A stretch of 64,000 bases of DNA from positions 62,001-126,000 of the IMG/VR virus record IMGVR_UViG_3300023174_000040, one strand, 5' to 3'. Both the position numbers and the translations under genes were made by a program. Below the pieces are notes generated by a model. That model was not told the origin of the DNA and did not search any database. It saw only the letters and a program-made list of their open reading frames with translations. How positions within the stretch are numbered: the first letter of the stretch is position 1; every line of letters begins with the position of its first letter. Shown piece by piece: positions 3,737 through 57,046 of the stretch.

Positions 3737-6700
3737 ATGAAAAGATATAATATAGCTTTAAAAAACAAATCAGATCAAGATAATTTTTGCAACGAAATGG
3801 TCTCTGTTGGGGCTACTAATAATTATGTTCCAGATAGATCTTGTGAACTTCTATCAAAATTTAAACACACATCAAATGCTACATTTATATTAACTGATGA
3901 TGAAGTAAAAAAATTGGAAAAAGATCCCAGAGTTTTAGCAATAAACCAACCATTTGCAGATAAAAATTATTTAATATTAACATGCGAACAACAAATAGAG
4001 GATGAAATTAAAAAATCTGAACCTCTTGGAATATTCAAATCTGATAGATTTTTTAAATATGAAAATCCTACAAAAAATCATCTTGATGCAATAAAAGAAT
4101 TAAAAAAAAGAATTTATAACCAACCAAATCAATCAATAAACACTATTCAATCATTGACATTAGAAGATAAAGAACTCACAATACAAAATTTGCCTGGTGG
4201 AGCAGATGTTGATATTATTATTTTTGATGAAGGACATCTAGATCCGGATAATCCAGAATATTCTATTAAAATTAATGGTATTGATAAAAGTAGAGTATTT
4301 CAAATAGACTGGTTTTCTCTTTTAGATACTGGAGTTTTTCCATCACGCACTGAAGATTTTCAGTATCCATATGGACCGACATATGCGGATCCCCCATACA
4401 GGAACCACGCATCTCATTGTGCAGGAATAGCAGCTGGAAAATTATTTGGATGGGCAAAAAAAGCAAATATTTATACCCTTTCTTATGGTTGGGTTGATAA
4501 TACAGGAAATTGGATAGGTCCAGAAGCGATACTAGAGTTTCATAACAACAAACCTATAAATCCTAGACACGGGAATAAAAATCCTACTATCGTAAACATG
4601 AGTTTTGGTTTTGCTGCATATAAGCCTATTAATAAAATTACTAAGGTCGTATATAGGGGAGTAACATATAATGCACCGAACGGAGGTTTCACTGGCGAAC
4701 AATTAGCTAATTATGGATTAATATCTTTTAATTCTTATATAATACATGGTGTAAGAGGTGATGCAACGATAGATAGTCAAATACAAGCAATGCTAGATGC
4801 AGGAATAATTTTAGTGGGAGCAGCTGGGAATTATTTTCATAAAATAGATGTGGTAGGAGGAGCTGATTATAATAATCATTACTATTATTTAGCGGACGGT
4901 CAAGAGCGAACAGAATACTATCATAGAGGATCTGGACCCACCTCAAATAATGGAGTAATTTGCGTAGGTAGTTTGTCTAATTATTTTAATGGATCTGAGG
5001 AATATAAGTCTGTTTTTAGTGAGACTGGACCTGGAGTGGATGTATATGCTCCGGGTGAAAATATTGTAAGTTGTATAGCAGGAAAATTTTCAGACAACAG
5101 TGATAAAGGCTATGACGGAGCCTGGTCCTCTTCTTATGTAGAACATCCAGATAATCCCAATTATAGAATAAGAAGAATGAGTGGAACAAGCATGGCTTGT
5201 CCTCAAGTTGTTGGAGCTTTGGCTTGCTATGCAGAGTCAAATAGAGAATTAACTCCAGAACAGGCAATGAATTTTATAAAAGATAATGCTATTTCTGCTA
5301 TAACAAGCGTAGGTTCAAATTATAATGATTTTAGAAATTTGCAAGGCGGAACAAATAAAATATTACATTATCCAAATATTAGTATAGCTACTTCTCTCTC
5401 AATCTTGACCAACGCTAGTTTTGAAACAACTACAGACGGAACTACCTCGCAATATATACCGGGATGGACTACGTATGGAGTTGCTAAATCTTCCATTTCT
5501 GTTGAGATTATTGACGGAGGCCCGGCACTAAAAATTTCCAGCACGAGCAAGGCATTCTGCTTTGAATTACCAATAGACCCTGCCCAAGACTATATTTTAA
5601 GCTTTAGAGCCAAAGCCAGTAATGCTAGACCGAAGGTAGAGTTTAATCCTACGTCTCCCTCACAATTCTGGATACCAGAACCAACACAATCTAATTTTGA
5701 CTGGAGGAATTTTACATTTACATGGTCCGCCTCAGCGAGAGGCAATGTAAAGGAAGTATGGATTGCTCTGCTACTGGAATGGGTTGGAAATGGGGCGACT
5801 GTATGGTTCAAGGATGTGAAATTAGAGCCTGTTGGCGGAGGCATCAATTCCATACCGAATTCTACCTTCTCGGAAACCGTGATAGAAACAACCGTGCCGA
5901 ATGGTTGGTCTATATATTCCGGAGTAGCGACAGTTTCGTTGGACCAGACCCAATCGACAAACAAATCTAGGAGTCTCAAGGTTAGCGGCGTCGGCCAGCC
6001 TGTAAGGATAGCTCAATCATTCAATTTGGATTCTGTCAAAACTCAAGGGATAAAGAGAGTAAAAATTTCTGCGTGGGGAAAATCAAATGGGCTCGGAAGT
6101 GATCGAGTAAAATTAGAAGTTTATGGAGCTAACACATCCTCTCCGACTATTTTAAATCTTTCCGGTGACACTGATTGGACAAAAGGAGAGATCATATTGA
6201 ATGTTGATCTCCAAAGTTCGTACCTTTTATTGTGGGTAAATGCTCCGAGACCGTTTTTGGGCGATGCATGGTTCGATGATATTCGTATAGAGGCTGTTGA
6301 AGATTCAGAGGTCGTGAATCTCCTTTCCAACCCTTCATTTTTACCTTCTGTTGCAAATCCTAATATTCCTGATTATTGGGGAGTTTGGGGAGATGCCACT
6401 TTAGGTATAGATCCTTGGACGCTTGATTTTTTTAGTATTGTAGATGAAATAAGTCCTGTAGCTTCTGCTGGCGTAATCAAAATAAGATATCCTTCTACAG
6501 GAAATTTTGTTCCAAAACCAGGCTCCAATCAACTTTCAATGTACTTGCTCACTGGCTCTCCACTATCGTTGGTTCCCGGAACCTATACTTTTTCAATTTA
6601 CGCAAAAGCGGATCGTTCAAATACTATTATTAATATCCAGCATCCATCAAAATTTTTTGCTACGGCACAGGTTGGTACAGAATGGCAGAGAATAACCGCT

Positions 6701-8389
6701 ACAAGTACGGACTTTGCTCTATTGCCATCAATTCATATTCAAGATCCAAATAGCACGGTTTGGTTTTCAGCTCCTCAGTTAGAAGCGGGCTCTAATGCTA
6801 CATCGTTCCGAAAGCCACCAGGCCAAGGAATTACTAGTAACCCAAGTCTCTCAAGTAATGTTTCTGCTACGCTAAAATCTACTATTCGAAACCATACTAT
6901 TAGTAAAATATACAGAGAAAGAGCAGCAAACGTAGTTCAACCGCTAACCATATATACAGAATATGATTATGTTCTAAATGAAACTAATGTTAGGGCAAGA
7001 TTGATCTGGTCTGGCAATGGTCAGACAACCATTCAGTGGAAACTCATAAGTGCTAATGGCACAGATTTAACAACAATACAATCAATAAATTTGAGTAAGC
7101 CAGGAATACACACATTCAATGTACCCATTTCTGGGTTGTCGGCTGGGGTCATTACAATTCAGGCTACGGCCTATTCTTCTGGTTCAGTAGTCGGCATGGC
7201 TTCAAATAACTTCAGAAAACTTAACAACGTGGCACGAGATGTTCGAGTGAATCGTTTCACTAGAAGTTTAAGAGTAAATAATGAACCATTTATTCCACTG
7301 TTTCTTCCAATCAACCCTACCGATGTTACAGATTGGCATTTGAATAGGTTTAAGACAGCAGGTTTTAATTGTTTAGTGGGAACACCAGGAACTCTACTTC
7401 AATCTGAAATTATAAACAACTCTGTACCACTCTCAAAAATTAATAACATAAATCAGCAGTTAGATAAATTGCATGCAGCAGGCATGGGTTTATTTTGGCC
7501 AATCCAATGGTCTCTCAATGACTGGTGGAATAATAAAAATTTTTATGATGGAAATATTTCGGGTTTAGCCAATACATATCAATGGATAGTCTCTACGTTT
7601 AAAAATCATCCCGCTATCTTGGGATGGTATATCATGGACGAACCTAGTGTATCTGATTGGGAAACCAACAGTGGTTTCTCTGAGTCAAATGTGAAAGATC
7701 TATGGCTTGCTGTTAAGACCTCCGATCCCGGCCGTCCGGCATACGTTAATTGGAATCATTCTTGGCAAATATCTCCTTATGGAGGATTTGAATGTACTGA
7801 CATATTGAGCCATGATGACTATTCTTTATCGGGAGAGACTTTTGATTATGGGGAATTATTATCTAATGTCAGGATGGTAAATAATTCTCAAGTAGGTCGA
7901 AAACCAACGTTCGAATTTATTTCGGGGTCGTATGACGAAGTTTTAATGAGACCATCTGCTGCGGCCCTGCGTGTTCATGCTTGGTTACATCTTGTTCACG
8001 GAACAAGAGGTTTTGGTTATTGGTCCAAGATTCCTATGGATCCTCAGGTATGGGCCGAAATGAGGACTTTCAATGAAAACTCTGCGGACTTACACAATCT
8101 TATTCTAGGAAATCCTGATGCTGTTTTGAGAACATCTAGTATTCCAAGTTCAACTATTCAGTATGCCATGTGGACGGTGGATGATTTTGCGTATTTGATC
8201 GCCGTGAATACTGCTTACTGTGATCAAACATTGAATATTGATGTCGCAAGCTTCTGCGAAAGGACGGTATCATCTGCAATTAAGCTTTATAGTTCAGGTA
8301 GTATTAATTCGGTTGATGGCATATTGAATGATAATATTGGACCATTAAATTATTGTGTTTATCGTTTCGTACTGGAACCAGGGACTTGA
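3737..8389 (+). CDS. S8 subtilase with carbohydrate-binding-like domains and a C-terminal glycoside-hydrolase-like domain
   Basis: Subtilisin motifs VDIIIFDEG, HASHCAGIAAG, AAGN, SGTSMACP; repeated N.SFE / WFDD.R.E galactose-binding-like segments; HPAILGWYIMDEP; ATG 3737 preferred to 3704. Confidence 0.85.
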   Translation: MKRYNIALKNKSDQDNFCNEMVSVGATNNYVPDRSCELLSKFKHTSNATFILTDDEVKKLEKDPRVLAINQPFADKNYLILTCEQQIEDEIKKSEPLGIFKSDRFFKYENPTKNHLDAIKELKKRIYNQPNQSINTIQSLTLEDKELTIQNLPGGADVDIIIFDEGHLDPDNPEYSIKINGIDKSRVFQIDWFSLLDTGVFPSRTEDFQYPYGPTYADPPYRNHASHCAGIAAGKLFGWAKKANIYTLSYGWVDNTGNWIGPEAILEFHNNKPINPRHGNKNPTIVNMSFGFAAYKPINKITKVVYRGVTYNAPNGGFTGEQLANYGLISFNSYIIHGVRGDATIDSQIQAMLDAGIILVGAAGNYFHKIDVVGGADYNNHYYYLADGQERTEYYHRGSGPTSNNGVICVGSLSNYFNGSEEYKSVFSETGPGVDVYAPGENIVSCIAGKFSDNSDKGYDGAWSSSYVEHPDNPNYRIRRMSGTSMACPQVVGALACYAESNRELTPEQAMNFIKDNAISAITSVGSNYNDFRNLQGGTNKILHYPNISIATSLSILTNASFETTTDGTTSQYIPGWTTYGVAKSSISVEIIDGGPALKISSTSKAFCFELPIDPAQDYILSFRAKASNARPKVEFNPTSPSQFWIPEPTQSNFDWRNFTFTWSASARGNVKEVWIALLLEWVGNGATVWFKDVKLEPVGGGINSIPNSTFSETVIETTVPNGWSIYSGVATVSLDQTQSTNKSRSLKVSGVGQPVRIAQSFNLDSVKTQGIKRVKISAWGKSNGLGSDRVKLEVYGANTSSPTILNLSGDTDWTKGEIILNVDLQSSYLLLWVNAPRPFLGDAWFDDIRIEAVEDSEVVNLLSNPSFLPSVANPNIPDYWGVWGDATLGIDPWTLDFFSIVDEISPVASAGVIKIRYPSTGNFVPKPGSNQLSMYLLTGSPLSLVPGTYTFSIYAKADRSNTIINIQHPSKFFATAQVGTEWQRITATSTDFALLPSIHIQDPNSTVWFSAPQLEAGSNATSFRKPPGQGITSNPSLSSNVSATLKSTIRNHTISKIYRERAANVVQPLTIYTEYDYVLNETNVRARLIWSGNGQTTIQWKLISANGTDLTTIQSINLSKPGIHTFNVPISGLSAGVITIQATAYSSGSVVGMASNNFRKLNNVARDVRVNRFTRSLRVNNEPFIPLFLPINPTDVTDWHLNRFKTAGFNCLVGTPGTLLQSEIINNSVPLSKINNINQQLDKLHAAGMGLFWPIQWSLNDWWNNKNFYDGNISGLANTYQWIVSTFKNHPAILGWYIMDEPSVSDWETNSGFSESNVKDLWLAVKTSDPGRPAYVNWNHSWQISPYGGFECTDILSHDDYSLSGETFDYGELLSNVRMVNNSQVGRKPTFEFISGSYDEVLMRPSAAALRVHAWLHLVHGTRGFGYWSKIPMDPQVWAEMRTFNENSADLHNLILGNPDAVLRTSSIPSSTIQYAMWTVDDFAYLIAVNTAYCDQTLNIDVASFCERTVSSAIKLYSSGSINSVDGILNDNIGPLNYCVYRFVLEPGT

Positions 8390-9410: not shown

Positions 9411-9689
9411 ATGGCTCGTCCTAAGAAGTATGTTCGTGGTCGTCGTGCTGGTAAGAAGAGTGTTGATATGGAAACGTTCCTCACTACGGTTGCCAAGGTG
9501 GCTGCTGCTGGTGGTACGCAGTCGGAAGTTGCCGATAAACTCGGTCTGACCGCTGGTGCTGTCAGCCTGCGTTGCAAGGCTCTCCGTGATCGTGGTGTCA
9601 AGGTTCCGAAGTTCACCAAGGCTGGTACTGTCGGTCGCCGTATTGACGTTGCCGCCTGTAATGCTATTCTGGCCGCTGCGGCTGGTTGA
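9411..9689 (+). CDS. small basic helix-turn-helix DNA-binding protein
   Basis: GTQSEVADKLGLTAGAVSLRCKALR HTH pattern; aagagg RBS; paralog of 12547..12816. Confidence 0.75.
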   Translation: MARPKKYVRGRRAGKKSVDMETFLTTVAKVAAAGGTQSEVADKLGLTAGAVSLRCKALRDRGVKVPKFTKAGTVGRRIDVAACNAILAAAAG

Positions 9690-9696
9690 TCGTTAC

Positions 9697-9759
9697 AGCA
9701 GAGGTGGGGAGCCTGCAACAAGGTGGTTGTGGAACAGGTTCAATTCCTGTTATCTGCTT
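9697..9759 (+). ncRNA. compact tRNA-like element
   Basis: AGCAGA/TCTGCT closing stem, AACAGG-TTCAATT-CCTGTT T-arm and GCAAC/GTTGT hairpin; no canonical D-arm or anticodon loop. Confidence 0.35.
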
Positions 9760-9792
9760 AAGACCCGCCCTAAATTGATTAGGGCGGGTCTT
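9760..9792 (+). terminator. intrinsic terminator hairpin
   Basis: aagacccgccctaa / ttagggcgggtctt inverted repeat followed by atctttt. Confidence 0.7.
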
Positions 9793-9815
9793 ATCTTTTA
9801 ATAAATCGAGATTTT

Positions 9816-10265
9816 ATGCTTAGTGATAAAATAAAAGTATTTCAAAATTGTGCAGGAATTAATTTCGCAAAAGACGGGTATTTATCCCCGGCTCTTATCG
9901 CTGAATATACAGATTCTGAAATCAATGTATATTCAGCAGATTTTAATTCGCCTGATGATAAAGAAAAATTTGCCGACTTTATCAGATATCAGATAATTGA
10001 AAAACAACTTGTTGAGTATCTTTTTGTTGCTGAATCTTGGATGAGTCTTTATGAAAAAGATGGATCTTTTGTTAAAAAGATAGAAGCAATAACAATGACT
10101 CACTGCAGCAAGTTTCTTCCATATGAAACAGGCTATTATTCGGAAATAGAAAGATTTTCCGAAGATACTGCTATTCTTAAAGAATGGGTTGAATTTGGTA
10201 AAACATATGGTAGTGAAGGTAATTTTTCTAATTTATTTCTTAAATGTTCTCACGAATGGAATTGA
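9816..10265 (+). CDS. hypothetical protein
   Basis: 149-aa ORF co-oriented with its neighbours. Confidence 0.7.
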   Translation: MLSDKIKVFQNCAGINFAKDGYLSPALIAEYTDSEINVYSADFNSPDDKEKFADFIRYQIIEKQLVEYLFVAESWMSLYEKDGSFVKKIEAITMTHCSKFLPYETGYYSEIERFSEDTAILKEWVEFGKTYGSEGNFSNLFLKCSHEWN

Positions 10266-10282
10266 ATAATAAAGGAATCATA

Positions 10283-11368
10283 ATGTCTGTGATCGAATCT
10301 GCCAATCTGTATTATAAAGAAGGCGCCAGTGACAAAGTTTATCACGCTACCATTGAAGATATTAGCAATGGGTATGTTGTGAATTTTAGTTATGGACGTA
10401 GGGGAAGTGCCTTGAAAACAGGTAGTAAAACCCAAAGTCCAACTACTCTCGAAGATGCCAAGACTATTTTTAATAATCTTGTAAAAGAAAAAACGAGCAA
10501 GGGATATAGGTTTGTTGAAAATGCCAATCCCTCTGAAATTCCTGTTGTGAGTGATGATCTGCCTGATACTCCCAATGAGATACAGTGCGTTCTCTTAAAT
10601 CCAATTAGTCAAGATGAAGCTGAAAAGCTTATTAATGATGATAATTGGGCTCTCCAGCACAAACTTGATGGTGTCCGGTTTATGCTGGGCAAGGAAAAGG
10701 ATCAGTCTCCCCACGGAATTAATCGTAAAGGCAAAAGGATCAGCATTCCTACTGTGATTTGGAATGTTGTCACTAAGTTTGATGATAATTTCTTAGTTGA
10801 TGGTGAACTAATTGGTGAGACTTTGCACGTTTTTGACATTCTCGAATATCGTAGCGAATGTCTCAGGAAGAAAAGTTTGATTGAGAGGATGAAATATCTC
10901 AAGACTTTGTTTAAGTACATTGAATCTGAGAATATTATTCATACTCCTCTTTATCTTGAAAAGAAAGAAAAGCGTGAGGTTTATGACAGTTTGCTTAAAG
11001 AAAACAAAGAAGGAGTTGTCTTTAAGCATATTGATGCTCACTATAATATTGGTCGCCCTGCAAGTGGCGGAAACTATTTGAAGTACAAGTTCTATAGCAC
11101 TTGTAGTTGCGTGGTAACTGATATTAATAAAAAGCGTAGTGCCGCTATTGGTCTTTATAAGGGAAAGAAACTTGTGAAGGCTGGTAACGTAACCATTCCT
11201 GTTAATTTCGATGTGCCGAATGTGGGCGAAATCGTAGAGGTAAAATACCTCTACGCCAGAAAGCAATCTGGTTCTCTGTATCAACCTATTTATTTGGGTG
11301 TTAGGAATGACATCTCAAAAGAAGAGTGCCAGCAAACACAATTAAAGTTTAAAGCAGAAGAAGAATGA
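10283..11368 (+). CDS. lig: WGR-domain ATP-dependent DNA ligase
   Basis: N-terminal WGR-like SDKVY...FSYGRRG; adenylation motif QHKLDGVR, VDGE, FDIL, EGVVFK, LKYKF; OB fold with EVKYL and YLGVRND. Confidence 0.9.
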   Translation: MSVIESANLYYKEGASDKVYHATIEDISNGYVVNFSYGRRGSALKTGSKTQSPTTLEDAKTIFNNLVKEKTSKGYRFVENANPSEIPVVSDDLPDTPNEIQCVLLNPISQDEAEKLINDDNWALQHKLDGVRFMLGKEKDQSPHGINRKGKRISIPTVIWNVVTKFDDNFLVDGELIGETLHVFDILEYRSECLRKKSLIERMKYLKTLFKYIESENIIHTPLYLEKKEKREVYDSLLKENKEGVVFKHIDAHYNIGRPASGGNYLKYKFYSTCSCVVTDINKKRSAAIGLYKGKKLVKAGNVTIPVNFDVPNVGEIVEVKYLYARKQSGSLYQPIYLGVRNDISKEECQQTQLKFKAEEE

Positions 11369-28541: not shown

Positions 28542-28818
28542 GGCCCAGTAGCTCAATTGGATAAGAGCAACAGCCTTCGTGAAATAGGAGTGCTTAAAGA
28601 GAAATCTTTAATGTAGAATCGCTTAAATTCGGTGAAGGCTTAACTGCTAATACCGAGCCAAGCCTAAGCAATTAGGAAGGTGTAGAGACTTAACAGGCGA
28701 CACCTAAAGTTGAAAGACAATGGTGAAGATAAAGTCCAGACCACAAACAGTAATGGTAGTGAAAACTATAGTGGTACCGCTAAGCTGTAGGTTCCAAGTT
28801 CGATCCTTGGCTGGGTCA
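28542..28818 (+). tRNA. tRNA-Arg(UCU) interrupted by a group I intron
   Basis: Exons 28542-28577 and 28780-28818 join into a cloverleaf (GGCCCAG/CTGGGTC, ACAGC-CTTCTAA-GCTGT, TTCGATC loop). Confidence 0.9.
28578..28779 (+). ncRNA. group I self-splicing intron (202 nt, no ORF)
   Basis: Core motifs aaattcggtgaa, aataccgagcc, gtagagact, aaagtcc; terminal G; P1 CTTC/GGAG with a U-G wobble at U28577. Confidence 0.9.
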
Positions 28819-44760: not shown

Positions 44761-45645
44761 GTGAAAATGACTAGTTACTCAGAAAAATATCACCAGTTCA
44801 TCTCAAACGTTACTTATGAGGATGTTGATTGTTTCATTAAAAATGGAACTATGATTAATGGGGAAAAGCCCAACAATATTCAAAAGATAGCTTTGTTTTC
44901 AATTATTAAGACAGAACCATATTATGCTTACTGCTATGCTAGGGATGTAATTAAAGACCGGTGGATTGAAGTTGAAGAAATCATAAAGAATAGCCGTCCA
45001 GAATATATCCATCATTATGCCAAAGATGTTATCAAGGGACGGTGGATTGAGTGCGAAGAGATTATCAAGAGTGATCCCCAGTATGCTTATCTTTATTCCA
45101 GAGATGTAATTAAAAATCGTTGGAATGAAGCAGAAGAGATTATTAAGACTGACCCATATTATGCCTATCTCTATGCTAGAGATATAATTAAAGATCGCTG
45201 GATTGAAGCAGAAAAAATTATTAAAACTAGTCCTGCATATGTTTACTATTACACCAAAGATGTCCTAAAAGATAGATGGATTGAAGCTGAGAGAGTTCTA
45301 ATCCACTATATGTATCTTTACGCCAAAGATATAATTAAAGGCAGATGGATCGAATCAGAAGGGATTATTAAAACTGATCCACGATATGCCTATTATTATG
45401 CTAGAGACGTAATCGAAGGTCGCTGGGTTGACGCAGAAGAAACCATAAAAACTAGTCCAGAGTATGCCTGTGGTTACGCTAAAGATGTAATTAAAGGAAG
45501 ATGGATTGAAGCAGAAGAAGTCATCAAGACTAGTCCAGAATTTCTTTATCAATATGCAGTCGAAGTAATCAAAGGAAGATTATCAGAAGAACTTGAAAGT
45601 GTTTTTGAAACACTCGAGTTTCCTTCCGGTACGGTTGGAGAGTAG
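44761..45645 (+). CDS. tandem-repeat (about 25-aa) helical solenoid protein
   Basis: About 9 copies of P.YAY.YARDVIKGRW.EAE.IIK. Confidence 0.85.
   Translation: MKMTSYSEKYHQFISNVTYEDVDCFIKNGTMINGEKPNNIQKIALFSIIKTEPYYAYCYARDVIKDRWIEVEEIIKNSRPEYIHHYAKDVIKGRWIECEEIIKSDPQYAYLYSRDVIKNRWNEAEEIIKTDPYYAYLYARDIIKDRWIEAEKIIKTSPAYVYYYTKDVLKDRWIEAERVLIHYMYLYAKDIIKGRWIESEGIIKTDPRYAYYYARDVIEGRWVDAEETIKTSPEYACGYAKDVIKGRWIEAEEVIKTSPEFLYQYAVEVIKGRLSEELESVFETLEFPSGTVGE
45618..45636 (+). promoter_or_regulatory. conserved 19-nt motif copy
   Basis: gtttccttccggtacggtt upstream of 45679. Confidence 0.65.
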
Positions 45646-46401: not shown

Positions 46402-47328
46402 ATGTCAAAGGAAAGTGCAACAAAGAAGAAGTGTCCCACTTGCGGCAAGGGCATTTCAAGCAAGAAGATTGCAGATAGCCTAATGCCAGATAGCCTGACA
46501 AGTCTTGGGACTGTTGCTAGGCTCAATAAAGATCTCACTAATAAGATCAAGACCCTCACCAAGGATGAAGTGAGGTATATTGTCGATTACTATTATATGA
46601 TTCAAGAGAATCGTAAGCGAAGCACTAATCAGATCACCGCTTTTGGCAAGGATAAAGAGCCTCATGAACTCTTTAGTTTCTTGAACGATCAAACAGAAGT
46701 TCTTGAAACTCAAATCAAACGGGCTATGGATCACTGGACTGATAGTTTTTTGATTGCAAAGATTTTGAAGGATAAGGTTTACGGAATCGGTCCTGTGATT
46801 ACTGCTGGTCTTGTTGCTCATATTGACATCAATAAGGCAAAGACCGCTGGTGCTATTTGGCGTTATGCTGGTCTTGATCCCACAAGTAAGTGGGAAAAGG
46901 GTCAAAAGCGTCCCTGGAACGCCAGCCTTAAAACCCTGTGCTGGAAGGTTGGACAGAGTTTCATGAAGTTCTCTGGTAAGGAAGAGTGCTTCTATGGTAA
47001 GCTTTACAAGTCCCAGAAGGAGTTTCTTGTAAAAAAGAACCTTGAAGGCGGATTCAAGGAACTTGCTGATTCTGTCTTGAATTCAAAGAACTTCAAGAAC
47101 AAGGAAGTTATCGCTAAGTATAAGAGTGGAATTCTGCCAGATGGTCATGTGGATGCTATGGCAAGGCGTTGGGTGGTTAAGTTGTTCCTGAGTAATGTCC
47201 ATGAACTTTGGTGCAAGGTTGAGGGAATTGATTGCCCCAAGCCTTATGTCATGGCTCATTTGGGACACACCCATCATATCATTCAGCCAAATCTTTTGGA
47301 TATTGATGAGTATTTGAAGAAGGATTAA
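46402..47328 (+). CDS. Nop-domain / IS110-related RNA-binding protein, TasA-like (no RuvC or HNH domain)
   Basis: Coiled coil, then VYGIGPVITAGLVAHIDI...GAIWRYAGLDP...WNASLKTLCW...HVDAMARRWVVKLFL (Transposase_20/Nop-like); no N-terminal DEDD RuvC domain and no IS110 SG serine motif; linked to 36-nt dual-repeat arrays. Confidence 0.8.
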   Translation: MSKESATKKKCPTCGKGISSKKIADSLMPDSLTSLGTVARLNKDLTNKIKTLTKDEVRYIVDYYYMIQENRKRSTNQITAFGKDKEPHELFSFLNDQTEVLETQIKRAMDHWTDSFLIAKILKDKVYGIGPVITAGLVAHIDINKAKTAGAIWRYAGLDPTSKWEKGQKRPWNASLKTLCWKVGQSFMKFSGKEECFYGKLYKSQKEFLVKKNLEGGFKELADSVLNSKNFKNKEVIAKYKSGILPDGHVDAMARRWVVKLFLSNVHELWCKVEGIDCPKPYVMAHLGHTHHIIQPNLLDIDEYLKKD

Positions 47329-47536: not shown

Positions 47537-47848
47537 ATGAATAAAAAGTTAAATTTTTTTAAAGATTTCACTTTAGGCGATGTCCTAAACAGTATAAATG
47601 AAAAATTTTTAGTTGATATGTCTAAAGATGAAGAAGAATACTTTCTCTGCCAAATAGAAATAGATAAAGTCGAACAGAATGATGTTGGAATTTTTGATGG
47701 AAAAAATTGTATGCGTTGTCTTTCCTCAAAAGATGTTCTTAAATTAATTGATCATATTTTAACAAAAGTCAAGAGTGAACCAGGTTTCTTGATTTTAACA
47801 TGCGTCATGAGTGAACCAGAAGCCCAGATAGGTTTATTGATAACATGA
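47537..47848 (+). CDS. hypothetical protein whose 3' end is TIGR-like repeat DNA
   Basis: ORF track; the last ~30 codons overlap the satellite array. Confidence 0.55.
   Translation: MNKKLNFFKDFTLGDVLNSINEKFLVDMSKDEEEYFLCQIEIDKVEQNDVGIFDGKNCMRCLSSKDVLKLIDHILTKVKSEPGFLILTCVMSEPEAQIGLLIT
47756..47829 (+). repeat. two-unit satellite TIGR-like array
   Basis: ATTTTAACA-aaagtcaag-AGTGAACC-aggtttcttg-ATTTTAACA-tgcgtcatg-AGTGAACC-agaagcccag-AT. Confidence 0.85.
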
Positions 47849-47926
47849 AAAAATAGTAGAGATCCGGCCGATTCCTTTTACCATTCGGCCCGAGAATAAA
47901 GAAACAAAAAGAAAACCTTAAAAATT

Positions 47927-48382
47927 ATGAATACTATTAAAATAGCCGCTGAAAAAGACTTGAATGTTGTAAATAAAATTTTTGAATGTTGGGACTTTCT
48001 TAAACTTTATGGATTTGTTCACGAGTTTGATGAAGATGAAGAGCAAATTTTAAAGTTTCTAACCGAGACTAAAAAGACTATTGAGAATTTATCAAACAAC
48101 CCAATTCAGACATTGATGGAATCCGATCCACATAATGAAGTTGTAGAAATTAATTTAAGCGGAAACAACGACCCGCTCAAAAGTTTTGTTCAAAATTTAG
48201 AAGATACTAATAAGAACAAAGTATTTTTCTTTTATGCGGATGTTTACGACCAAGTTCCAAATTTTGATTGGCCTAAAATTTGGGAAAAAATTGCCAAAAA
48301 TACAATCGAAGCACTACTGATGGAAAAGTATGAAGTAAAGTGGATGACCGGCGGATACGTTGGCAAATTTCCGGTTGAATAA
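47927..48382 (+). CDS. hypothetical protein
   Basis: ORF track. Confidence 0.7.
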   Translation: MNTIKIAAEKDLNVVNKIFECWDFLKLYGFVHEFDEDEEQILKFLTETKKTIENLSNNPIQTLMESDPHNEVVEINLSGNNDPLKSFVQNLEDTNKNKVFFFYADVYDQVPNFDWPKIWEKIAKNTIEALLMEKYEVKWMTGGYVGKFPVE

Positions 48383-48488
48383 AACCACATCGTCTGACTT
48401 GTGGTCAAAGATTGGAATTGTTTGGAACAATGTTATAAGTTAGACACCAGGTGATCTTTGAAAATCTTTAAATAAAGGAAAAGAAAAA

Positions 48489-48794
48489 ATGAACAATAAG
48501 ACTGGTTCAATGGTTTATGCTAAGATTACAGGTCGAGGTGAGTTTCCTATTGATATGTTAAGGTATGATTTGTGTAGTCCTGCAACAGAAGAAGATAGCA
48601 ATTTGATTCGCAGGACATTTTATGGTCTTAATTATAACTGGATTGTGATTGTTAAGCGACCTTTGCTTGAACGACGGCTTAAGAACAATCCTGTTTTTAC
48701 TTATGGTCGTTGGCAGAGTTTTGGTTGTAATATTGTTGAAGTTAATTCTTGTTACGAAAGTCGGATGGTAAAACCGGAAGTAATTGCCGGGTAA
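48489..48794 (+). CDS. hypothetical phage protein
   Basis: GRGEFPIDMLRYD...GRWQSFG. Confidence 0.75.
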   Translation: MNNKTGSMVYAKITGRGEFPIDMLRYDLCSPATEEDSNLIRRTFYGLNYNWIVIVKRPLLERRLKNNPVFTYGRWQSFGCNIVEVNSCYESRMVKPEVIAG

Positions 48795-48813
48795 TTTAAA
48801 ACTGGAGAAAAAA

Positions 48814-49140
48814 ATGCTAACCGAAATTAGTGTTGTTGCAAGCGATGATGAAACTTTTGAAAAGTATGGTGACGAAATAGACTTTAACATTGAAGTTGAA
48901 TGGGACGAATCAACAATAAGTTGGGAAAGTGATATTTGGAATACTTACGTTGGACCAACTGGAATTTTAGAAGAGTTTGTTGATGCTAAACTTAAGCAAG
49001 CCAAGTTAGATGGCGAACTTATGCCCCTGACTGAAGATCTTGAAAAGTTTGCAATCAAGAAACTGAGGGAGGGATGGCTTAAGGCCACAAATACATCAAA
49101 TGGCTATAGTGGTGAAATCTTAGATATGTATGAAGAATAA
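48814..49140 (+). CDS. acidic hypothetical protein
   Basis: ggaga RBS. Confidence 0.7.
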   Translation: MLTEISVVASDDETFEKYGDEIDFNIEVEWDESTISWESDIWNTYVGPTGILEEFVDAKLKQAKLDGELMPLTEDLEKFAIKKLREGWLKATNTSNGYSGEILDMYEE

Positions 49141-49767
49141 ATGATAAAACAAGCAATGAACGAGTTGTCTATTGAAGAAATTCAAAAAAATTTGAATTTT
49201 ACTGTCCCCAATATCACAGATTTTGTAGAAAAATACAAAAATCATTTTGAAGAATTTCTAAAAGATCCGACAGAACTTGTCACAAAAATAATTCGTGCAA
49301 TAGTGTCTAAAAAAAATTATGAGCATTTAGCAGAAGAATTAGATTTGCCGCCTTCATATGTTTATAGTATTGGCGTAATGATGAAAAATAATTCAGAATT
49401 TATAAAAAATTCTAATTCATTTGAGTCTATGCTTTGTTCTTTTTCAAAAAATATAAATTACGAATCTTTTTTACATTCAACAAAAGCAAAAAAAGAAAGC
49501 GAATTTATAATCAATATTTACAATTTTGAATTTCCAGATTGGTTTGACGAATCTGAACCATTGGTGATAACTTATCCTTGTGATATTTCTAATTACTTTG
49601 AATTACAAGATAATTTACATTTGAGGATTTTTGAAAACAATCATTGGGAATGTCCTTTGAGAAATCAAACTGGAGATAAACATCATTACATTACTGCTGA
49701 AACCAATCTTCAAAAAGAAGAAATGTTGCAATTTTTATTGTTGGGCTGTAAATATTTATTTTATTGA
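49141..49767 (+). CDS. hypothetical protein
   Basis: ORF track. Confidence 0.7.
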   Translation: MIKQAMNELSIEEIQKNLNFTVPNITDFVEKYKNHFEEFLKDPTELVTKIIRAIVSKKNYEHLAEELDLPPSYVYSIGVMMKNNSEFIKNSNSFESMLCSFSKNINYESFLHSTKAKKESEFIINIYNFEFPDWFDESEPLVITYPCDISNYFELQDNLHLRIFENNHWECPLRNQTGDKHHYITAETNLQKEEMLQFLLLGCKYLFY

Positions 49768-49779
49768 GAAGAAAAATTT

Positions 49780-50184
49780 ATGAATATCGGAAAACTTATT
49801 AAAGAAAATCGCAAAAAATTAAATATGACCCAAAAAGAGTTGGCACAAACTCTTGGAATTAGTCATATCACAGTTTGCAGATGGGAAACTAATTTTATAG
49901 TTCCAACAAATTATAACTGGATAGTTCTACAAAATTTATTCGGACTACGAAAAGACAATTTAATAATGCCAACTAAAGGCTTTACACCAGTAAAAGTTAG
50001 AATTATTAAGCCTTTGAAAAAATTCAAGAAAATAAATAAAACCGCTGAAAGAAACAAACAAATTATCGAAAATTATAAAAAAGGAATACCAATAGACAAT
50101 TTAGCAAAATTCTACTCCATAAAGGAAAGTACAATAAAAAGTATTCTACTTAGTCAAAAAATAAAATTAAATGTAAGAGAATAA
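49780..50184 (+). CDS. XRE/Cro-family HTH transcriptional regulator
   Basis: IKENRKKLNMTQKELAQTLGISHITVCRWE; second HTH-like tail IDNLAKFYSIKESTI. Confidence 0.85.
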   Translation: MNIGKLIKENRKKLNMTQKELAQTLGISHITVCRWETNFIVPTNYNWIVLQNLFGLRKDNLIMPTKGFTPVKVRIIKPLKKFKKINKTAERNKQIIENYKKGIPIDNLAKFYSIKESTIKSILLSQKIKLNVRE

Positions 50185-50211
50185 GATTTTGATTCCCAGC
50201 CAGTGGCTGGG

Positions 50212-50840
50212 ATTTTAACAAGAGTCAAGAGTGAACCAGAAGCCCAGATTTTTTCATTTTGCCGGAGTGAACCAACCTGATTGATTTTAACAAGGACGAG
50301 AAGTGAACCATTATTAACGATTTTAACATGAACGTTGAGTGAGTCATCAGACTGGATTTTTACATACTGCCGGAGCGAACCAAGCCCGACGATTTTAACA
50401 AGGTGATCAAGTGAACCAGCGATGGTGATTTTTAACAAAAGAACCATCATTCGATATTTAACAAGGTAGTTGAGTGAACCAATGTGAGAGATTTTGCATG
50501 TATAGTGAGTGAACCTTCGACCCGGATTTTAACACTGATCAAGAGTGAACCTAGCCCTTCGATTTTAACAAGGTAGTTGAGTGAACCACAGTCGGGAATT
50601 TTAACAAATTTGGTGAGTGAACCATCATTCGATATTTTAACAAGGTAGTTGAGTGAACCACAGACCCGGATTTTAAACAGTGATCAACAGTGAACCAATT
50701 TGCTTGATTTTAACAAGGTGAAAGAGTGAACCTAGTGCCGGTATTTTAACAATGTGCGAGAGTGAACCAAATAAGAAGATTTTAACATGATGGTTTAGTG
50801 AACCTAGCTGTGCGATTTTAACAATGTGCGAGAGTGAACC
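50212..50840 (+). repeat. TIGR-like tandem interspaced guide RNA array (18 units, 36-nt period)
   Basis: Alternating ATTTTAACA and AGTGAACC blocks separated by variable 9-nt and 10-nt segments; one unit partly deleted. Confidence 0.88.
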
Positions 50841-50891
50841 AAAAAATTCTACTTGAAAAAAGTTTAAAAGTGTGTTAAAGTGAAAAACCAA

Positions 50892-50910
50892 GTTTCCCTC
50901 CGGTACGGTT
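50892..50910 (+). promoter_or_regulatory. conserved 19-nt motif copy
   Basis: gtttccctccggtacggtt just downstream of the array. Confidence 0.65.
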
Positions 50911-51024
50911 GGAGGGAACTTTGTGAGCGTGACTTGGGGCTGCCTCTCCTAAATCTATAGTCCGTAAAAAGTGTAAAAATAATCAGTGCAGAATAACCCA
51001 CAAACACTCAAAGGAGAAATTAAA

Positions 51025-51369
51025 ATGAAATGGACAAATTGTTATACGCAAGAAAGTGCCAAGTATATTGCTAACTGCCCTACTATTGCAAGGGCTTATG
51101 GATATTCCACCAATTATAAGCCTAATCAATCATACAAAATTTTAGAATTTAAAAATGGTCTTGGAGATATTTGGTGTGAAATACAAATAAAAGGTATTTT
51201 CTTTAATAAATGTTTTAAGTGTTGGCATCCGTCTGAATATGGCCCAACATCTTTTATACCATCCTTCAAAAGTAAAGAAGATATTAAAGATTTTTTCATT
51301 GCTCTTGAAAAAGAATATAGTAATTATAAATTAAAAAACACAATTACAATTCAAGAATCATCAATGTGA
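51025..51369 (+). CDS. hypothetical protein
   Basis: aaggag RBS. Confidence 0.7.
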   Translation: MKWTNCYTQESAKYIANCPTIARAYGYSTNYKPNQSYKILEFKNGLGDIWCEIQIKGIFFNKCFKCWHPSEYGPTSFIPSFKSKEDIKDFFIALEKEYSNYKLKNTITIQESSM

Positions 51370-51381
51370 ACTCCAAAATAA

Positions 51382-51466
51382 GCTGAAGTGGCGAAACTGG
51401 CGAAACGCAGGGGACTTAAAATCCCCCACATTAGAAACACTGCGGGTTCGAATCCCGCCTTCAGCA
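51382..51466 (+). tRNA. tRNA-Leu(UAA)
   Basis: GCTGAAG/CTTCAGC acceptor, GGGGA-CTTAAAA-TCCCC anticodon arm, long variable arm, TTCGAAT loop. Confidence 0.95.
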
Positions 51467-51482
51467 CTGTAAATAAAAACAA

Positions 51483-51842
51483 GGGGGCGTAAAGGTATCG
51501 ACTGGATAAAAAGATTTATAACTGCATGTCGAGGTTAGTCGAACGGCCTCGTTAAAATTCGACTAAAGCCTTAACTGGCACTGTTAATTACGCAATGGCT
51601 GCCTGATAAAAAGGGCAACCACGAATCTAGGAAGCTAATGTTGGATGCGTCCTAAAATTCGTCGTCAAATCCAACTGGTTTTCTGGTGGTCAACTTACCT
51701 GAAAACGAGAAAATAGGTTGAGAGATTTTAAAGACTTTTGTTTATTGTAATCTTTAAAATCTATTTGAACAATAAACCAAACATGTGAAGAAGTTATATT
51801 TTGATTTATTTCAGGACAGGAGTTCGACTCTCCTCGCCTCCA
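51483..51842 (+). ncRNA. ssrA: tmRNA; tag (A)GTVNYAMAA*
   Basis: 5' GGGGGCG pairs with 3' CGCCTCC-A, G-U at position 3, T-arm caggag-ttcgact-ctcct; tag ORF ggc act gtt aat tac gca atg gct gcc tga. Confidence 0.92.
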
Positions 51843-51867
51843 TTTATAATTTCAACTAAAGGAAAAC

Positions 51868-52074
51868 ATGAAAAAAATCGTTAATAACAACAACAATCTA
51901 AAAATAAAAAAGATCGTTGGTTCTACCCTTTGCTTTTTGATTTTATCTTCTGCCGTTATTGCAATTGCAGGTATTTGGGGTGGATTGACAGGAGAAATTG
52001 TTTGGCAATGTCTCCTTACATTTGGTGTAGCAGGATCATCAATTGCCTTGGGTGCTGCTGTCTACTTTAAATAA
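51868..52074 (+). CDS. two-helix membrane protein
   Basis: aagga RBS; hydrophobic. Confidence 0.7.
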   Translation: MKKIVNNNNNLKIKKIVGSTLCFLILSSAVIAIAGIWGGLTGEIVWQCLLTFGVAGSSIALGAAVYFK

Positions 52075-52078
52075 TATA

Positions 52079-52176
52079 GGTTGATTTCCCGACTTTAAAT
52101 AATCTGGATTGGTCAAAGGGGTTTGACTGTAAATCAAATGCTATTAGCTTCGCAGGTTCGAATCCTGCATCAACCA
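52079..52176 (+). tRNA. tRNA-Tyr(GUA) with an enlarged D-loop
   Basis: GGTTGAT/ATCAACC acceptor, TTTGA-CTGTAAA-TCAAA, long variable arm; about 16 extra nt in the D-loop. Confidence 0.85.
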
Positions 52177-52324
52177 GTTTATTTTTCCTCTGCCCTCTCC
52201 CTAGTGCCTCTCTCGCCCCACCGTTGGCCCTCTCCCGCCCGTTTCCCGCTTCTCGTTCCACAGACTCCATGAGCAGCAAAAACCTTCACAGTCACCTTTT
52301 TAAGAAGCTCTTTTAAGGGAAAAA

Positions 52325-52573
52325 ATGAAACCTATTGAAGTTGGATTTGATGGAAGTTTTCAGATATGGTCAAAACACTTACCATCTAAAACCACAGACA
52401 TAAGACTGGCAGAGTTGCCAACATCTGAAAACTTTTCAGAATCATCGAATCCAAATTTTCAATTACCCAATACATTTTTATGGATCAGATCAGAAGATCC
52501 AAGGTTATTATACAGAAACAAGGATGGCACACTTTATAATGTTAATTTTGAGTCTATAGCAAAATCTGTTTGA
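52325..52573 (+). CDS. hypothetical protein
   Basis: ORF track. Confidence 0.6.
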   Translation: MKPIEVGFDGSFQIWSKHLPSKTTDIRLAELPTSENFSESSNPNFQLPNTFLWIRSEDPRLLYRNKDGTLYNVNFESIAKSV

Positions 52574-52824
52574 ATCAACCACTAAACAAGAAAGGACTTT
52601 TTGTTGTGAGTTCTGTTAAAGCCAGTAAGTCAGTAAGGAATTGGGTTGTTGCAACATACTGCGATTATGGTCAAGAGAATAAAAAGAGAGTTCTTAGACT
52701 TAGTTATAGTCTAAAATCAAGTAAGGGTGCTTGGGATAAACTCAAGAATTATTTCAGCAAGAATGGTTATCGTTGTTGGCAAGAGGATAAAAAGGGAAAT
52801 ATCCTAAACGACAGTAGGTCATAG
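52570..52824 (+). CDS. hypothetical protein
   Basis: ORF track (TTG start). Confidence 0.55.
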   Translation: MNQPLNKKGLFVVSSVKASKSVRNWVVATYCDYGQENKKRVLRLSYSLKSSKGAWDKLKNYFSKNGYRCWQEDKKGNILNDSRS

Positions 52825-52827
52825 ATC

Positions 52828-53502
52828 ATGGAACATTTACAACAAAAATATTGTTTTTCATTATTAAAAAAATTCAATATTCCTATTGAAACAATAATAG
52901 ATGTGGGAGTATTTGTTGACACTCCTGTTTTAAGAAGTTTTTTCCCAGATAAAACTCACATATTATTTGAACCAATAGAAGAATTTCGGCCAATTATAGA
53001 AAATACATACAGAGATATTCAACACAAACTTTATAGTTTTCCTTTATATGAAGAAGACTGTGAAGTGAAAATGAAAATTAGTCTTGATGAAAATAAAAAA
53101 ATTAAACATTCAAGAATAACAAAAGAAGATTGTAAAAATTTTCGTGTAATGCAGGCTAAAAAGCTAGATTCAGTACTAAAAGACACCGATTTTAAAAAAC
53201 CTTACTTTCTAAAATTAGATGTCGATGATGCCGAATTAGAAATATTAAAAGGTGCAGTTGAAACTCTAAAATACTGTTCTGTTATACAGATAGAGATGCA
53301 CCCGAGAGATTTTCTGGAACGTTCTAATTTTATAGAACAACATGGTTTTAAATTGTTTGACATAGTGGATAATATTTACTATGAGGGACAATTAAGACAA
53401 TTCGATATGTTTTTTGTAAAAAGAGATATTTTAATAGAATATAATAGAGATTTTGAGAGTATGAAACTATTTGATCCAAATCTGTGGAAATCATTTAGAT
53501 GA
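52828..53502 (+). CDS. FkbM-family methyltransferase
   Basis: IIDVGV, LFEP, KLD, FLKLDVDDAELEILKGA, IQIE. Confidence 0.85.
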   Translation: MEHLQQKYCFSLLKKFNIPIETIIDVGVFVDTPVLRSFFPDKTHILFEPIEEFRPIIENTYRDIQHKLYSFPLYEEDCEVKMKISLDENKKIKHSRITKEDCKNFRVMQAKKLDSVLKDTDFKKPYFLKLDVDDAELEILKGAVETLKYCSVIQIEMHPRDFLERSNFIEQHGFKLFDIVDNIYYEGQLRQFDMFFVKRDILIEYNRDFESMKLFDPNLWKSFR

Positions 53503-55786: not shown

Positions 55787-56116
55787 ATGAACGATATGCT
55801 AAAAGAAAAAATAAGTGAAAAGCCAGTCAGGATGATTGAAAAGGCTTGCTATTTCAATCAAATGAGGTCAGATGGAGACACTTGGCGTATTCATGGCGTT
55901 GTGGATGGAACGGAATTGATGCCTAGTCGCCCAATCGGTTTCGATAAAGATAAAAATATATTCGAAACCAAGAACACAATTTACAAGGTTGTTTCTTGGG
56001 GTACTATGACCAAGTGCATTGACGAAGAATTCTGGAAGCAAGTAGAAGCTGATATTAAAGAGATTAGGCAGCGACTTAATAGCTACCACAATTTAAAAAG
56101 GTTCAGTCTTGATTAA
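55787..56116 (+). CDS. hypothetical phage protein
   Basis: IFETKNTIYKV motif. Confidence 0.65.
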   Translation: MNDMLKEKISEKPVRMIEKACYFNQMRSDGDTWRIHGVVDGTELMPSRPIGFDKDKNIFETKNTIYKVVSWGTMTKCIDEEFWKQVEADIKEIRQRLNSYHNLKRFSLD

Positions 56117-56762
56117 GATTATCAAAGAAATTGTTTCAAAAGAAACTCATTGCTATGTTGCCGTAAGCATGGGTGTCGATAGCGTATCTTCTTTATTTTG
56201 GTTGAGAAGCAAGGGATACAACATTACTCCATTGCACTTTAATCATAATCTAAGAGAACAGAACCATGCCATGGAAAATAAGTTCCATGAACTTTGTGGT
56301 AAATTAGGATTAAAAGGTATTGTGGGCAGAGGTGAAAACTTAAAAACAGAAAAAGATTGCAGAGATGCCCGCTTAAATTTTTATAAAGAGGTTGTGGATT
56401 ACGAAGGTTATGTAATCACTGCTCATCATCTCAATGATTATGTGGAAAGCTATTTAATTAATTGTTTTCGTGGACAACCCAATCACAATCCTTTTGAATT
56501 AATTAGCGAGTTCGATGGATTCAAGATCATCCATCCTTTTCTATTAAGTAAGAAAAAAGATTTTCAAGAGTACGTTGACAGGAATAAATGGAACTGCTAT
56601 ACTGTGGAGGACGAAACCAATAAGGTTGTCAAAGGAAGCAGAAGAAATTGGATTCGTCAAATAATCATTCCAGAAATGAAAAAACAAAAGTTAAGTCTAG
56701 AAAAATATTGTTCAAGGAGAATTGAAAAGAACTTGAAGAATAAGACGGTAATTCTAGACTAG
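56109..56762 (+). CDS. tilS: tRNA(Ile)-lysidine synthetase, catalytic domain only
   Basis: VAVSMGVDS (PP-loop), HFNHNLR, RDARLNF, ITAHHLNDYVESYL, HPFL, EDETN, RNWIR. Confidence 0.9.
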   Translation: MIKIIKEIVSKETHCYVAVSMGVDSVSSLFWLRSKGYNITPLHFNHNLREQNHAMENKFHELCGKLGLKGIVGRGENLKTEKDCRDARLNFYKEVVDYEGYVITAHHLNDYVESYLINCFRGQPNHNPFELISEFDGFKIIHPFLLSKKKDFQEYVDRNKWNCYTVEDETNKVVKGSRRNWIRQIIIPEMKKQKLSLEKYCSRRIEKNLKNKTVILD

Positions 56763-56778
56763 CACAGTTGGTTAATTT

Positions 56779-57042
56779 CCGAAGGTAGCAAAACGGTTAA
56801 TGCAACAAACTCATGAATTTTCGTGCCATACGATTGGAAACTTCGTATGGGATGTCGTCAAATTCGGTGAAACCTAAATGCGTGAGCATATGGCAATGCC
56901 GAGCGAAGCCCGTAAGGGAACGTGTAGAGACTTAACGGCGACCACCTAAATCGTAAGATATGGTGAAGACAAAGTCCAAGGAGTGGTGAAAATCACACAA
57001 ACTTGAATTTGTAGACTGTGGGTTCGAATCCCACCCTTCGGA
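56779..57042 (+). tRNA. tRNA(CAU), probably Ile2, interrupted by a group I intron
   Basis: Exons 56779-56814 and 57006-57042 give CCGAAGG/CCTTCGG-A and ACAAA-CTCATAA-TTTGT; lies 16 nt after tilS. Confidence 0.88.
56815..57005 (+). ncRNA. group I self-splicing intron (191 nt, no ORF)
   Basis: aaattcggtgaa, caatgccgagc, gtagagact, aaagtcc; terminal G; P1 CATGAA/TTCGTG with a U-G wobble at the 5' splice site. Confidence 0.9.
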
Positions 57043-57046
57043 CGTA

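Follow-up and report, generated by a model that had tools for sequence, protein, structure and literature searches.

A probable dual-repeat TIGR-TasA locus of a large freshwater phage and its module-wise array turnover

Introduction

What does a large phage do with a tandem array in which two short repeats alternate between short variable segments, and does such an array belong to a known kind of RNA-guided system? The array considered here lies in a 64-kb stretch of DNA (the window) that is AT-rich (35% GC) and phage-like and that belongs to a large freshwater phage represented by a 323-kb contig, IMGVR_UViG_3300023174_000040. Lake and freshwater metagenomes contain the window sequence; a megablast search of positions 48000-53000 returned zero matches among GenBank phages.

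In CRISPR-Cas systems, repeats of 25-36 nt alternate with spacers of ~30 nt in the company of cas genes. Thousands of arrays of another type, TIGR arrays, have been catalogued since 2025. TIGR-Tas was described in that year by Faure et al. in Science (PMC12045711): its arrays alternate between two repeats of 8-12 nt, named edge and loop, which are separated by 9-nt spacers, and the members studied use 36-nt tigRNAs for tandem-spacer targeting, in which each of the two spacers pairs with a different strand of the DNA target with no PAM requirement (PMC12045711). TasA has been described as an RNA-guided repressor (bioRxiv 10.64898/2026.09.09.750476).

We conclude with high confidence that the locus is a dual-repeat TIGR-TasA of this phage, for which we propose RNA-guided DNA binding and repression. 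It is an uncharacterised new member of an already known class and otherwise ordinary. Its value is comparative: freshwater metagenomes contain several arrays with the same repeats, some near-identical and others more distant.

Results

A nuclease-free Tas protein is encoded 5' of the array

The protein partner of the array is encoded by the following gene:

46402..47328, + strand: tasA, 308 aa, with a Nop-type RNA-binding domain and a coiled coil

In phmmer searches of the PDB, the tasA product matched TasH (21kl_A, E=1.1e-16) and TasR (9mty_A, E=7.9e-12), and homologues of similar size number more than 2,288. An AlphaFold model based on 32 homologues is all-helical with a pLDDT of 86, residues 1-40 being of low confidence; compared with the PDB using Foldseek, its top 11 matches were chains of TasH or TasR, with E-values of 5e-8 to 4e-5, the next being the IS621 recombinase at E=1.6e-2. 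Furthermore, Y282 and H289 align with the catalytic Y289 and H296 of SpTasH, the residues that process pre-tigRNA in that protein (PDB 9W03, 9W04, 21KL), and H289 is invariant among the 32 homologues. Judged by its sequence and predicted fold, the 308-aa ORF is a Tas protein.

The N-terminus consists of ~40 disordered residues with a single CxxC, the first long helix of the model begins at residue 54, and the alignment with TasR begins at query residue 68, which corresponds to TasR residue 125. Such an N-terminus is too short for an HNH or RuvC domain, and we therefore assign the protein to TasA; the Pfam scan of the protein likewise returned zero nuclease families. We also considered an IS110 recombinase. 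The protein falls into PHROG 4285, annotated 'transposase' (E=2.5e-36), and matches the Pfam family Transposase_20 (PF02371). The latter match lies narrowly under the cut-off and covers residues 126-162 only, PF01548 is absent and the fold match to IS621 is weak, and we rejected this identity.

The array is built of 36-nt dual-repeat units

The array and the elements around it are as follows:

50195..50841, + strand: main TIGR array of 18 modules, each with an edge AGTGAACCA, a first spacer (S1, 9 nt), a loop ATTTTAACA and a second spacer (S2, 9 nt)
50203, 50239, 50275, 50311, 50347, 50383, 50419, 50447 and 50482, + strand: starts of S1 in modules 1-9
50517, 50553, 50589, 50625, 50661, 50698, 50734, 50770 and 50806, + strand: starts of S1 in modules 10-18
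50833-50841, + strand: full edge repeat that closes the main array (array end)
47756..47827, + strand: proximal array fragment, made up of a loop, the S2 aaagtcaag, an edge, module m1 (ggtttcttg / tgcgtcatg), an edge and the orphan S1 gaagcccag
50861..50887, + strand: degenerate repeat-like remnant (AGTTTAAAA, 9 nt, AGTGAAAAA), conserved in the related contig L013
50887..50924, + strand: downstream stem-loop with a 12-13 bp stem (-17 kcal/mol, z -1.9), without a U tract on the + strand

An earlier note on this DNA had placed an array of paired short spacers at 50212-50840, and there is indeed an array with a 36-nt period at this position (Tandem Repeats Finder periods 36, 72, 108 and 145). When up to 2 mismatches are allowed, the 64-kb window contains 18 matches to the pattern ATTTTAACA-N9-AGTGAACC against 0.05 expected (at most 1 in 100 shuffles); 16 of these matches fall in the main array and 2 in a second cluster at 47756-47827. 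Each 36-nt unit comprises a 9-nt edge, a 9-nt spacer, a 9-nt loop and a 9-nt spacer, the arrangement of a dual-repeat array. The variable segments that the note had listed are all present as written, including the deleted unit, and its notion of short paired guides holds; its sizes of 9 and 10 nt give way to 9+9 nt, the first base of its 10-mers being the A of the conserved CCA (A in 14 units, T in 4).

The repeats are conserved far more strongly than the spacers. Across 76 distinct units, G occupies position 9 in ~87% of cases in both spacers, positions 1-8 are almost information-free, and the GC content of the spacers is 47-48%, compared with 35% for the genome. Within the main array, modules 8 and 13 are identical, module 7 (S1 at 50419) is broken by a 9-bp deletion, of which the intact version is found in run X8 from another lake metagenome and in contig L035, and several repeats deviate from the consensus (AGTGAGTCA, AGCGAACCA, ATTTTTTCA and ATTTTGCA). 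The 5' edge of module 1 is degenerate: where the array of L013 starts with the 5'-truncated edge GTGAACCA, that of the window starts with the degenerate copy CCCAGCCA, in keeping with the truncated edge at the start of dual-repeat arrays.

The proximal fragment represents two more units of the same array, one of them a complete module (m1), and overlaps the 3' end of the ORF at 47537-47848. This 103-aa ORF reads through the fragment, such that its final ~30 residues are encoded by repeat units; over residues 1-83 its conservation in L013 is 92%. It is a candidate for a real gene fused to the array. Downstream of the main array, 74 nt at the stem-loop are 100% identical in L013. That contig also carries, at 9514-10887, a 457-aa PcfJ-like ORF (PF14284, E=7.5e-25) between the last edge repeat and the downstream hairpin, which the window does not have.

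A CRISPR-Cas identity was considered and rejected: both repeats and spacers are 9 nt long, an Rfam scan of the window found zero CRISPR direct-repeat families, and Pfam and PHROG searches of the ten flanking ORFs found zero Cas families. An array of promoters was a further candidate, the minus-strand sequence TGTTAAAAT resembling an extended -10 element; a promoter scan found 18 sites, compared with 18.2 for shuffled sequences, and this candidate was likewise dismissed.

Spacer co-conservation sets the guide register

The edge AGUGAACCA carries the UG...CCA boxes that have been described for TasR repeats (PMC12045711). The loop AUUUUAACA has U/ACA in place of the canonical UG/CCA boxes: compared with the edge, U replaces G at positions 2 and 4 and A replaces C at position 7, differences that are consistent, on our reading, with a compensatory G-C to U-A change.

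We then compared ten arrays sharing these repeats (those of the window and of contigs L013, L014, L025, L028, L029, L030, L032, L034 and L035), the relatives being drawn from viral and metagenome scans. Among informative cases, adjacent spacers were co-conserved across the loop ATTTTAACA in 49 of 91 and across the edge AGTGAACCA in 20 of 118. Fisher's test gives an odds ratio of 5.7 with p = 2e-8, a p value that is optimistic because reciprocal comparisons were counted twice. In addition, distant arrays had only loop-spanning spacer pairs in common. Taken together, the boxes, the truncated start and full closing edge of the array, the co-conservation and the sharing between distant arrays indicate that AGTGAACCA is the edge, the predicted cut site, and ATTTTAACA the loop. 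Read in this way from the sequences, the working guide is edge, S1 (9 nt), loop, S2 (9 nt), edge.

The co-conserved pairs fix the register and thereby determine which spacers are to be combined in target searches. The pairs listed in the earlier note prove to be half a unit out of register, the true pair being the spacer after AGTGAACCA and the next spacer after ATTTTAACA; the listed pairs lie on either side of the edge, not of the loop, and their composites combine spacers from two different guide RNAs. More generally, spacer co-conservation provides a means of distinguishing edge from loop repeats from sequence alone.

The tasA-array association in relatives and the split array of the window

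The gene and the array occur together in related contigs. In L014, the 3' end of a gene for a 93%-identical TasA lies 20 bp 5' of a 46-module array, and in L013 a 99%-identical TasA is encoded 5' of the array. Contigs L016 and L017 encode 47%-identical homologues followed by same-strand arrays with their own repeat sequences, and L001 encodes a 43%-identical homologue with one motif match ~260 bp downstream on the same strand. The gene-array association is thus conserved across diverged homologues. The arrays of L016 (6790-7030) and L017 (6790-7070) are short and use a different repeat set, with the edge AATGAATCA and loop variants ending ...CA; they begin immediately after a hairpin 3' of the gene for the TasA homologue.

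In the window, the array is split, with the following elements at the break:

47828..50194, + strand: array-splitting insert of 2.4 kb with five ORFs, absent in L013
49780-50184, within the insert: ORF for an HTH_3 protein (Pfam/PHROG)
47809-47829 and 50229-50249: 21-bp direct repeat flanking the insert, consisting of edge repeat and spacer
50194..50213, + strand: terminator-like hairpin (-14.8 kcal/mol, z = -3.2), then UUUU

In L013, the proximal fragment and the main array are contiguous. TIGR arrays may thus act as hot spots for the insertion and deletion of gene cassettes. The hairpin that the earlier note had seen immediately 5' of its array is real, and it owes its terminator look to the UUUU that follows. 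Its left arm is the degenerate, 5'-truncated first edge CCCAGCCA (50195-50202), and its right arm is the first spacer, the S1 gtggctggg (50203-50211); the aligned array start of L013, edge and spacer together, reads GTGAACCA gtggctgag. The hairpin may insulate the main array from upstream transcription, and the main array, lying 2.4 kb from tasA behind this hairpin, may be poorly transcribed.

These features raise the possibility of a TIGR array that, though genuine, is in decay or silent here, cut off from tasA and with little present function, as the 2.4-kb insert, the hairpin-UUUU directly 5' of the array, the deviating repeats and the 9-bp deletion in module 7 would suggest. Against this, the array of the window recurs without a single difference in contigs from two other freshwater studies (X2 and X3), the repeats have been kept far more strictly than the spacers, tasA is intact with 97.8% nucleotide identity to its L013 counterpart, and modules 2, 4 and 5, despite their degenerate repeats, are kept unchanged in L013 and L035. 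We therefore regard decay or silence as unlikely, and a working dual-repeat TIGR-TasA as the better reading.

Arrays change by whole two-spacer modules

Between the window and L013, the flanks are 96-98% identical and the array only ~80%. Similarly, L014 and L032 are 98.7% identical downstream and ~74% across the array, with about one third of their modules in common. Modules are thus gained and lost as whole units between phages whose flanks are 96-99% identical; judged from these comparisons, the units of change are modules, not single spacers or bases, and they change much faster than the genome around them.

Two modules were found with their spacers in exchanged positions. The first is tcagactgg / tactgccgg in the window and L013 and tactgccgg / tcagactgt in L025 and L029; the second is acctg[a/c]ttg / aggacgaga in the window, L013 and L032 and aggacgaaa / acctgcttg in L014. 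In the opposite, edge-spanning register, the related arrays contained zero such swaps, against these two loop-spanning ones, and the expected number of related or swapped pairs arising by chance among 134 modules is 0.006. With S1 and S2 exchanged, a guide still specifies the same duplex, now read from the opposite strand; guides with swapped spacers are functional in TasR (PMC12045711). That both swapped modules specify the same duplex as their counterparts provides indirect support for tandem-spacer recognition. Ordinary unequal crossing-over keeps S1 spacers in S1 slots and S2 spacers in S2 slots, which leads us to suggest either selection for the same target or acquisition that is blind to orientation.

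Among 30 related module pairs, the differences at spacer positions 1 to 9 numbered 5, 5, 4, 3, 4, 13, 2, 11 and 10. Positions 4, 5 and 7 are critical in TasR, as seed and nickase positions (PMC12045711). Substitutions appear rarest at these same three positions, a match that is only suggestive because the module pairs are non-independent.

In the 46-module array of the 188-kb relative L014 (6880-8600), several modules have been duplicated as a segment, and the copies now differ by 1-3 substitutions that are confined to the spacers; the array of L028 opens with a perfect tandem duplicate of one module. These duplicates point to duplication followed by mutation as one route to new modules.

We also put forward, tentatively and with more doubt than conviction, that TIGR arrays take up complete modules, two spacers at a time, from double-stranded DNA targets and in either orientation, and that conserved modules mark real targets shared by this phage group. 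If so, TIGR arrays would have an unrecognised adaptation process. The exchanged spacer slots, the module-wise gains and losses and the scarcity of substitutions at positions 4, 5 and 7 are consistent with this idea. The swapped modules, being hard to explain by ordinary recombination, bear on how spacers are gained and on whether spacer targets are real, questions that the field calls open.

The same turnover weighs on a second alternative, in which the array is a DNA-level element, that is, iterons or a centromere-like array with neutral linkers, bound for example by the adjacent HTH protein. Two short conserved blocks alternating at 18-bp spacing would suit such an element, and the 3' end of the HTH_3 gene is 20 bp 5' of the main array. 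We reject this reading because the HTH gene is part of the cassette missing from L013, whose array is intact. Moreover, the constant companion of the array is the gene for the Tas homologue, the linkers have a GC content of 47-48% in a genome of 35%, and swapped modules would make no sense for neutral linkers. The earlier note had named neutral drift of a DNA protein-binding repeat as an outcome that would overturn its interpretation, and drift is contradicted by the replacement of linkers as whole two-spacer modules between flanks that are 96-99% identical. All this leaves a protein-bound DNA element very improbable.

Finally, the 36-bp period could be a 12-residue protein repeat, on either strand or in an alternative code, given that 36 nt make 12 codons and that ORFs of 98 and 72 aa cross parts of the array on the minus strand, but we give this next to no credence. 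On the + strand, two frames have TAA or TGA within the conserved blocks and the third has stops in the spacers, and the 35- and 37-nt units break every frame. The minus-strand ORFs are about as long as chance predicts with 6 variable codons per unit, the genome gives no sign of another code, and zero frames are open through all units in several related arrays.

Target searches in the window, viral contigs and genomes

The earlier note had proposed targets composed of one spacer and the reverse complement of its partner; this is the published TIGR-Tas rule (PMC12045711), and the Tas protein is present. From the published 8-nt 3' overhang, we derive that one target strand has the sequence of S1 and then that of the reverse complement of S2.

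The window was searched with the arrays masked, gaps of 0-2 allowed and shuffled partners as the control. In the corrected register, the matches at 0, 1, 2 and 3 mismatches numbered 0, 0, 1 and 3, against 0, 0, 0.18 and 2.7 for shuffled partners. The best of them, for module 3 at 56608-56626 (minus strand, 2 mismatches, 1-bp gap), lies inside a TilS-like gene; its DNA is not conserved in the homologous genes of L096 and L097, and we attribute the match to chance. The absence of a convincing self-target, noted before by eye, thus holds within the 64-kb window. Composites in the register of the earlier note, which serve here as mis-paired controls, gave zero window matches at up to 2 mismatches and counts equal to those of the controls; three such units scanned against viral contigs gave 0, 4 and 1 matches, zero of them in the phage's own or related contigs.

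The corrected composites were also taken beyond the window. In viral contigs, module 3 gave 51 matches, which fall in unrelated genes sharing the peptide DE[ITN][KN][KQ]V and were discounted as a codon-usage artefact, and modules 5 and 8 gave 3 and 6 matches, which is the chance level; except for the TilS site, the scans with modules 3, 5 and 8, the three most conserved, gave zero matches in the phage's own or related contigs. Among 185,579 genomes, module 5 had 64 matches scattered over all phyla in unrelated contexts, the two in a single Rhodopirellula MAG being the same repeated sequence. No result of the analysis bears on the planctomycete hosts that the earlier note had named as candidates. 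In 0.86 Mb searched with the 134-137 distinct modules of related arrays, there were zero independent matches at up to 1 mismatch.

The comparison of composite matches with shuffled controls, by which the earlier note had proposed that its reading be judged, thus gave no enrichment in the window, viral contigs and genomes, the searches outside the window covering 6 of ~19 composites. This agrees with the statement of the TIGR-Tas authors that false positives are numerous with short spacers and that the natural targets are still to be established. The predicted targets of the four most widely conserved modules, GAAGCCCAG+CCGGCAAAA, ACCTGMTTG+TYTCGTCCT, TCAGACTGK+CCGGCAGTA and TCATTCGAW+CAAYTACCT, are the first candidates for target hunting.

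Other features of the window

The TilS-like ORF (56109-56762) encodes a phage-borne tRNA(Ile)-lysidine synthetase-like PP-loop protein, with PF01171 detected in its homologues, and belongs to a family that is common across large phage contigs (382 homologues at E<=1e-20). Just downstream of it lies the second of two group I introns found with Rfam (28567-28760 and 56805-56998), and an unusual tRNA-like call at 56976-57043 overlaps this intron. Positions 51382-51845, ~0.5 kb 3' of the array on the same strand, encode a tRNA-Leu(UAA) and a tmRNA of full length (139.6 bits; tag GTVNYAMAA), and a 294-aa ORF at 44761-45645 has internal repeats and gives multiple overlapping tblastn matches onto one region of contig L007. 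In the related phage contig L096, homologues of TasA and TilS are accompanied by a TnpB/IS605 OrfB-like protein (PF01385, PF07282), encoded at 6283-7449.

Discussion

How might such a locus work? We infer processing, dimer binding, tandem-spacer targeting and repression from published relatives. In the mechanism that we propose, the array would be transcribed from the + strand, and a TasA dimer would bind the transcript and cut within each edge AGUGAACCA by means of Tyr282 and His289, releasing 36-nt tigRNAs composed of a half-edge, S1 (9 nt), the loop AUUUUAACA, S2 (9 nt) and a half-edge. S1 would then pair with one of the target's strands and S2 with the adjacent stretch of the other strand, a gap of 0-2 bp being tolerated. 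As TasA is without a nuclease, the expected outcome is sequence-specific DNA binding, which would block transcription or occlude a site in the host, in a competing mobile element or in the phage itself. RNA-guided DNA binding and transcriptional repression are, by analogy, the likely mode of action here.

The locus most closely follows the dual-repeat TIGR-TasA systems such as that of Flavonifractor plautii (FpTasA; PMC12045711). Common to both are a solo Nop-domain Tas protein beside two alternating short repeats, 9-nt spacer pairs, a 36-nt unit and a truncated edge at the start of the array; the phage system, known here from sequence, differs in having its own repeat sequences, a loop AUUUUAACA without UG/CCA boxes and an array split by a 2.4-kb cassette. 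The closest solved relative is SpTasH of Salicola phage CGphi29 (PDB 9W03, 9W04, 21KL), by sequence (E=1.1e-16) as well as by fold (E=5e-8). It, too, belongs to a phage-borne dual-repeat system, and the Y/H processing pair is conserved between the two proteins, whereas SpTasH has an N-terminal HNH nuclease, cleaves DNA and uses spacers that total 16 nt. TaTasR (PDB 9MTY) likewise combines a Nop domain and a coiled coil with 9+9-nt spacers and an edge of the form UG...CCA, but bears an N-terminal RuvC nuclease domain that is absent here. A nuclease-free effector is shared with the repressors MbTasA and catalytically dead TasR (bioRxiv 10.64898/2026.09.09.750476); those have stem-loop arrays, occur in CPR bacteria and are without the Y/H loop, in contrast to the dual-repeat phage system described here.

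Further afield, the IS110/IS621 bridge-RNA recombinases possess a related RNA-binding domain (Nop-like, Transposase_20). The phage locus is set apart from them by the absence of a DEDD/RuvC domain, of a single two-loop bridge RNA and of transposon ends, and by guides that are arrayed. With CRISPR arrays it shares the repeat-spacer logic, the processing into unit guides, which is predicted here, and a rapid turnover of variable units between close relatives; it differs from them in lacking cas genes, any known adaptation machinery and, by analogy with its relatives, a PAM, and in using two alternating 9-nt repeats and split 9+9-nt guides that would pair with both strands of the target.
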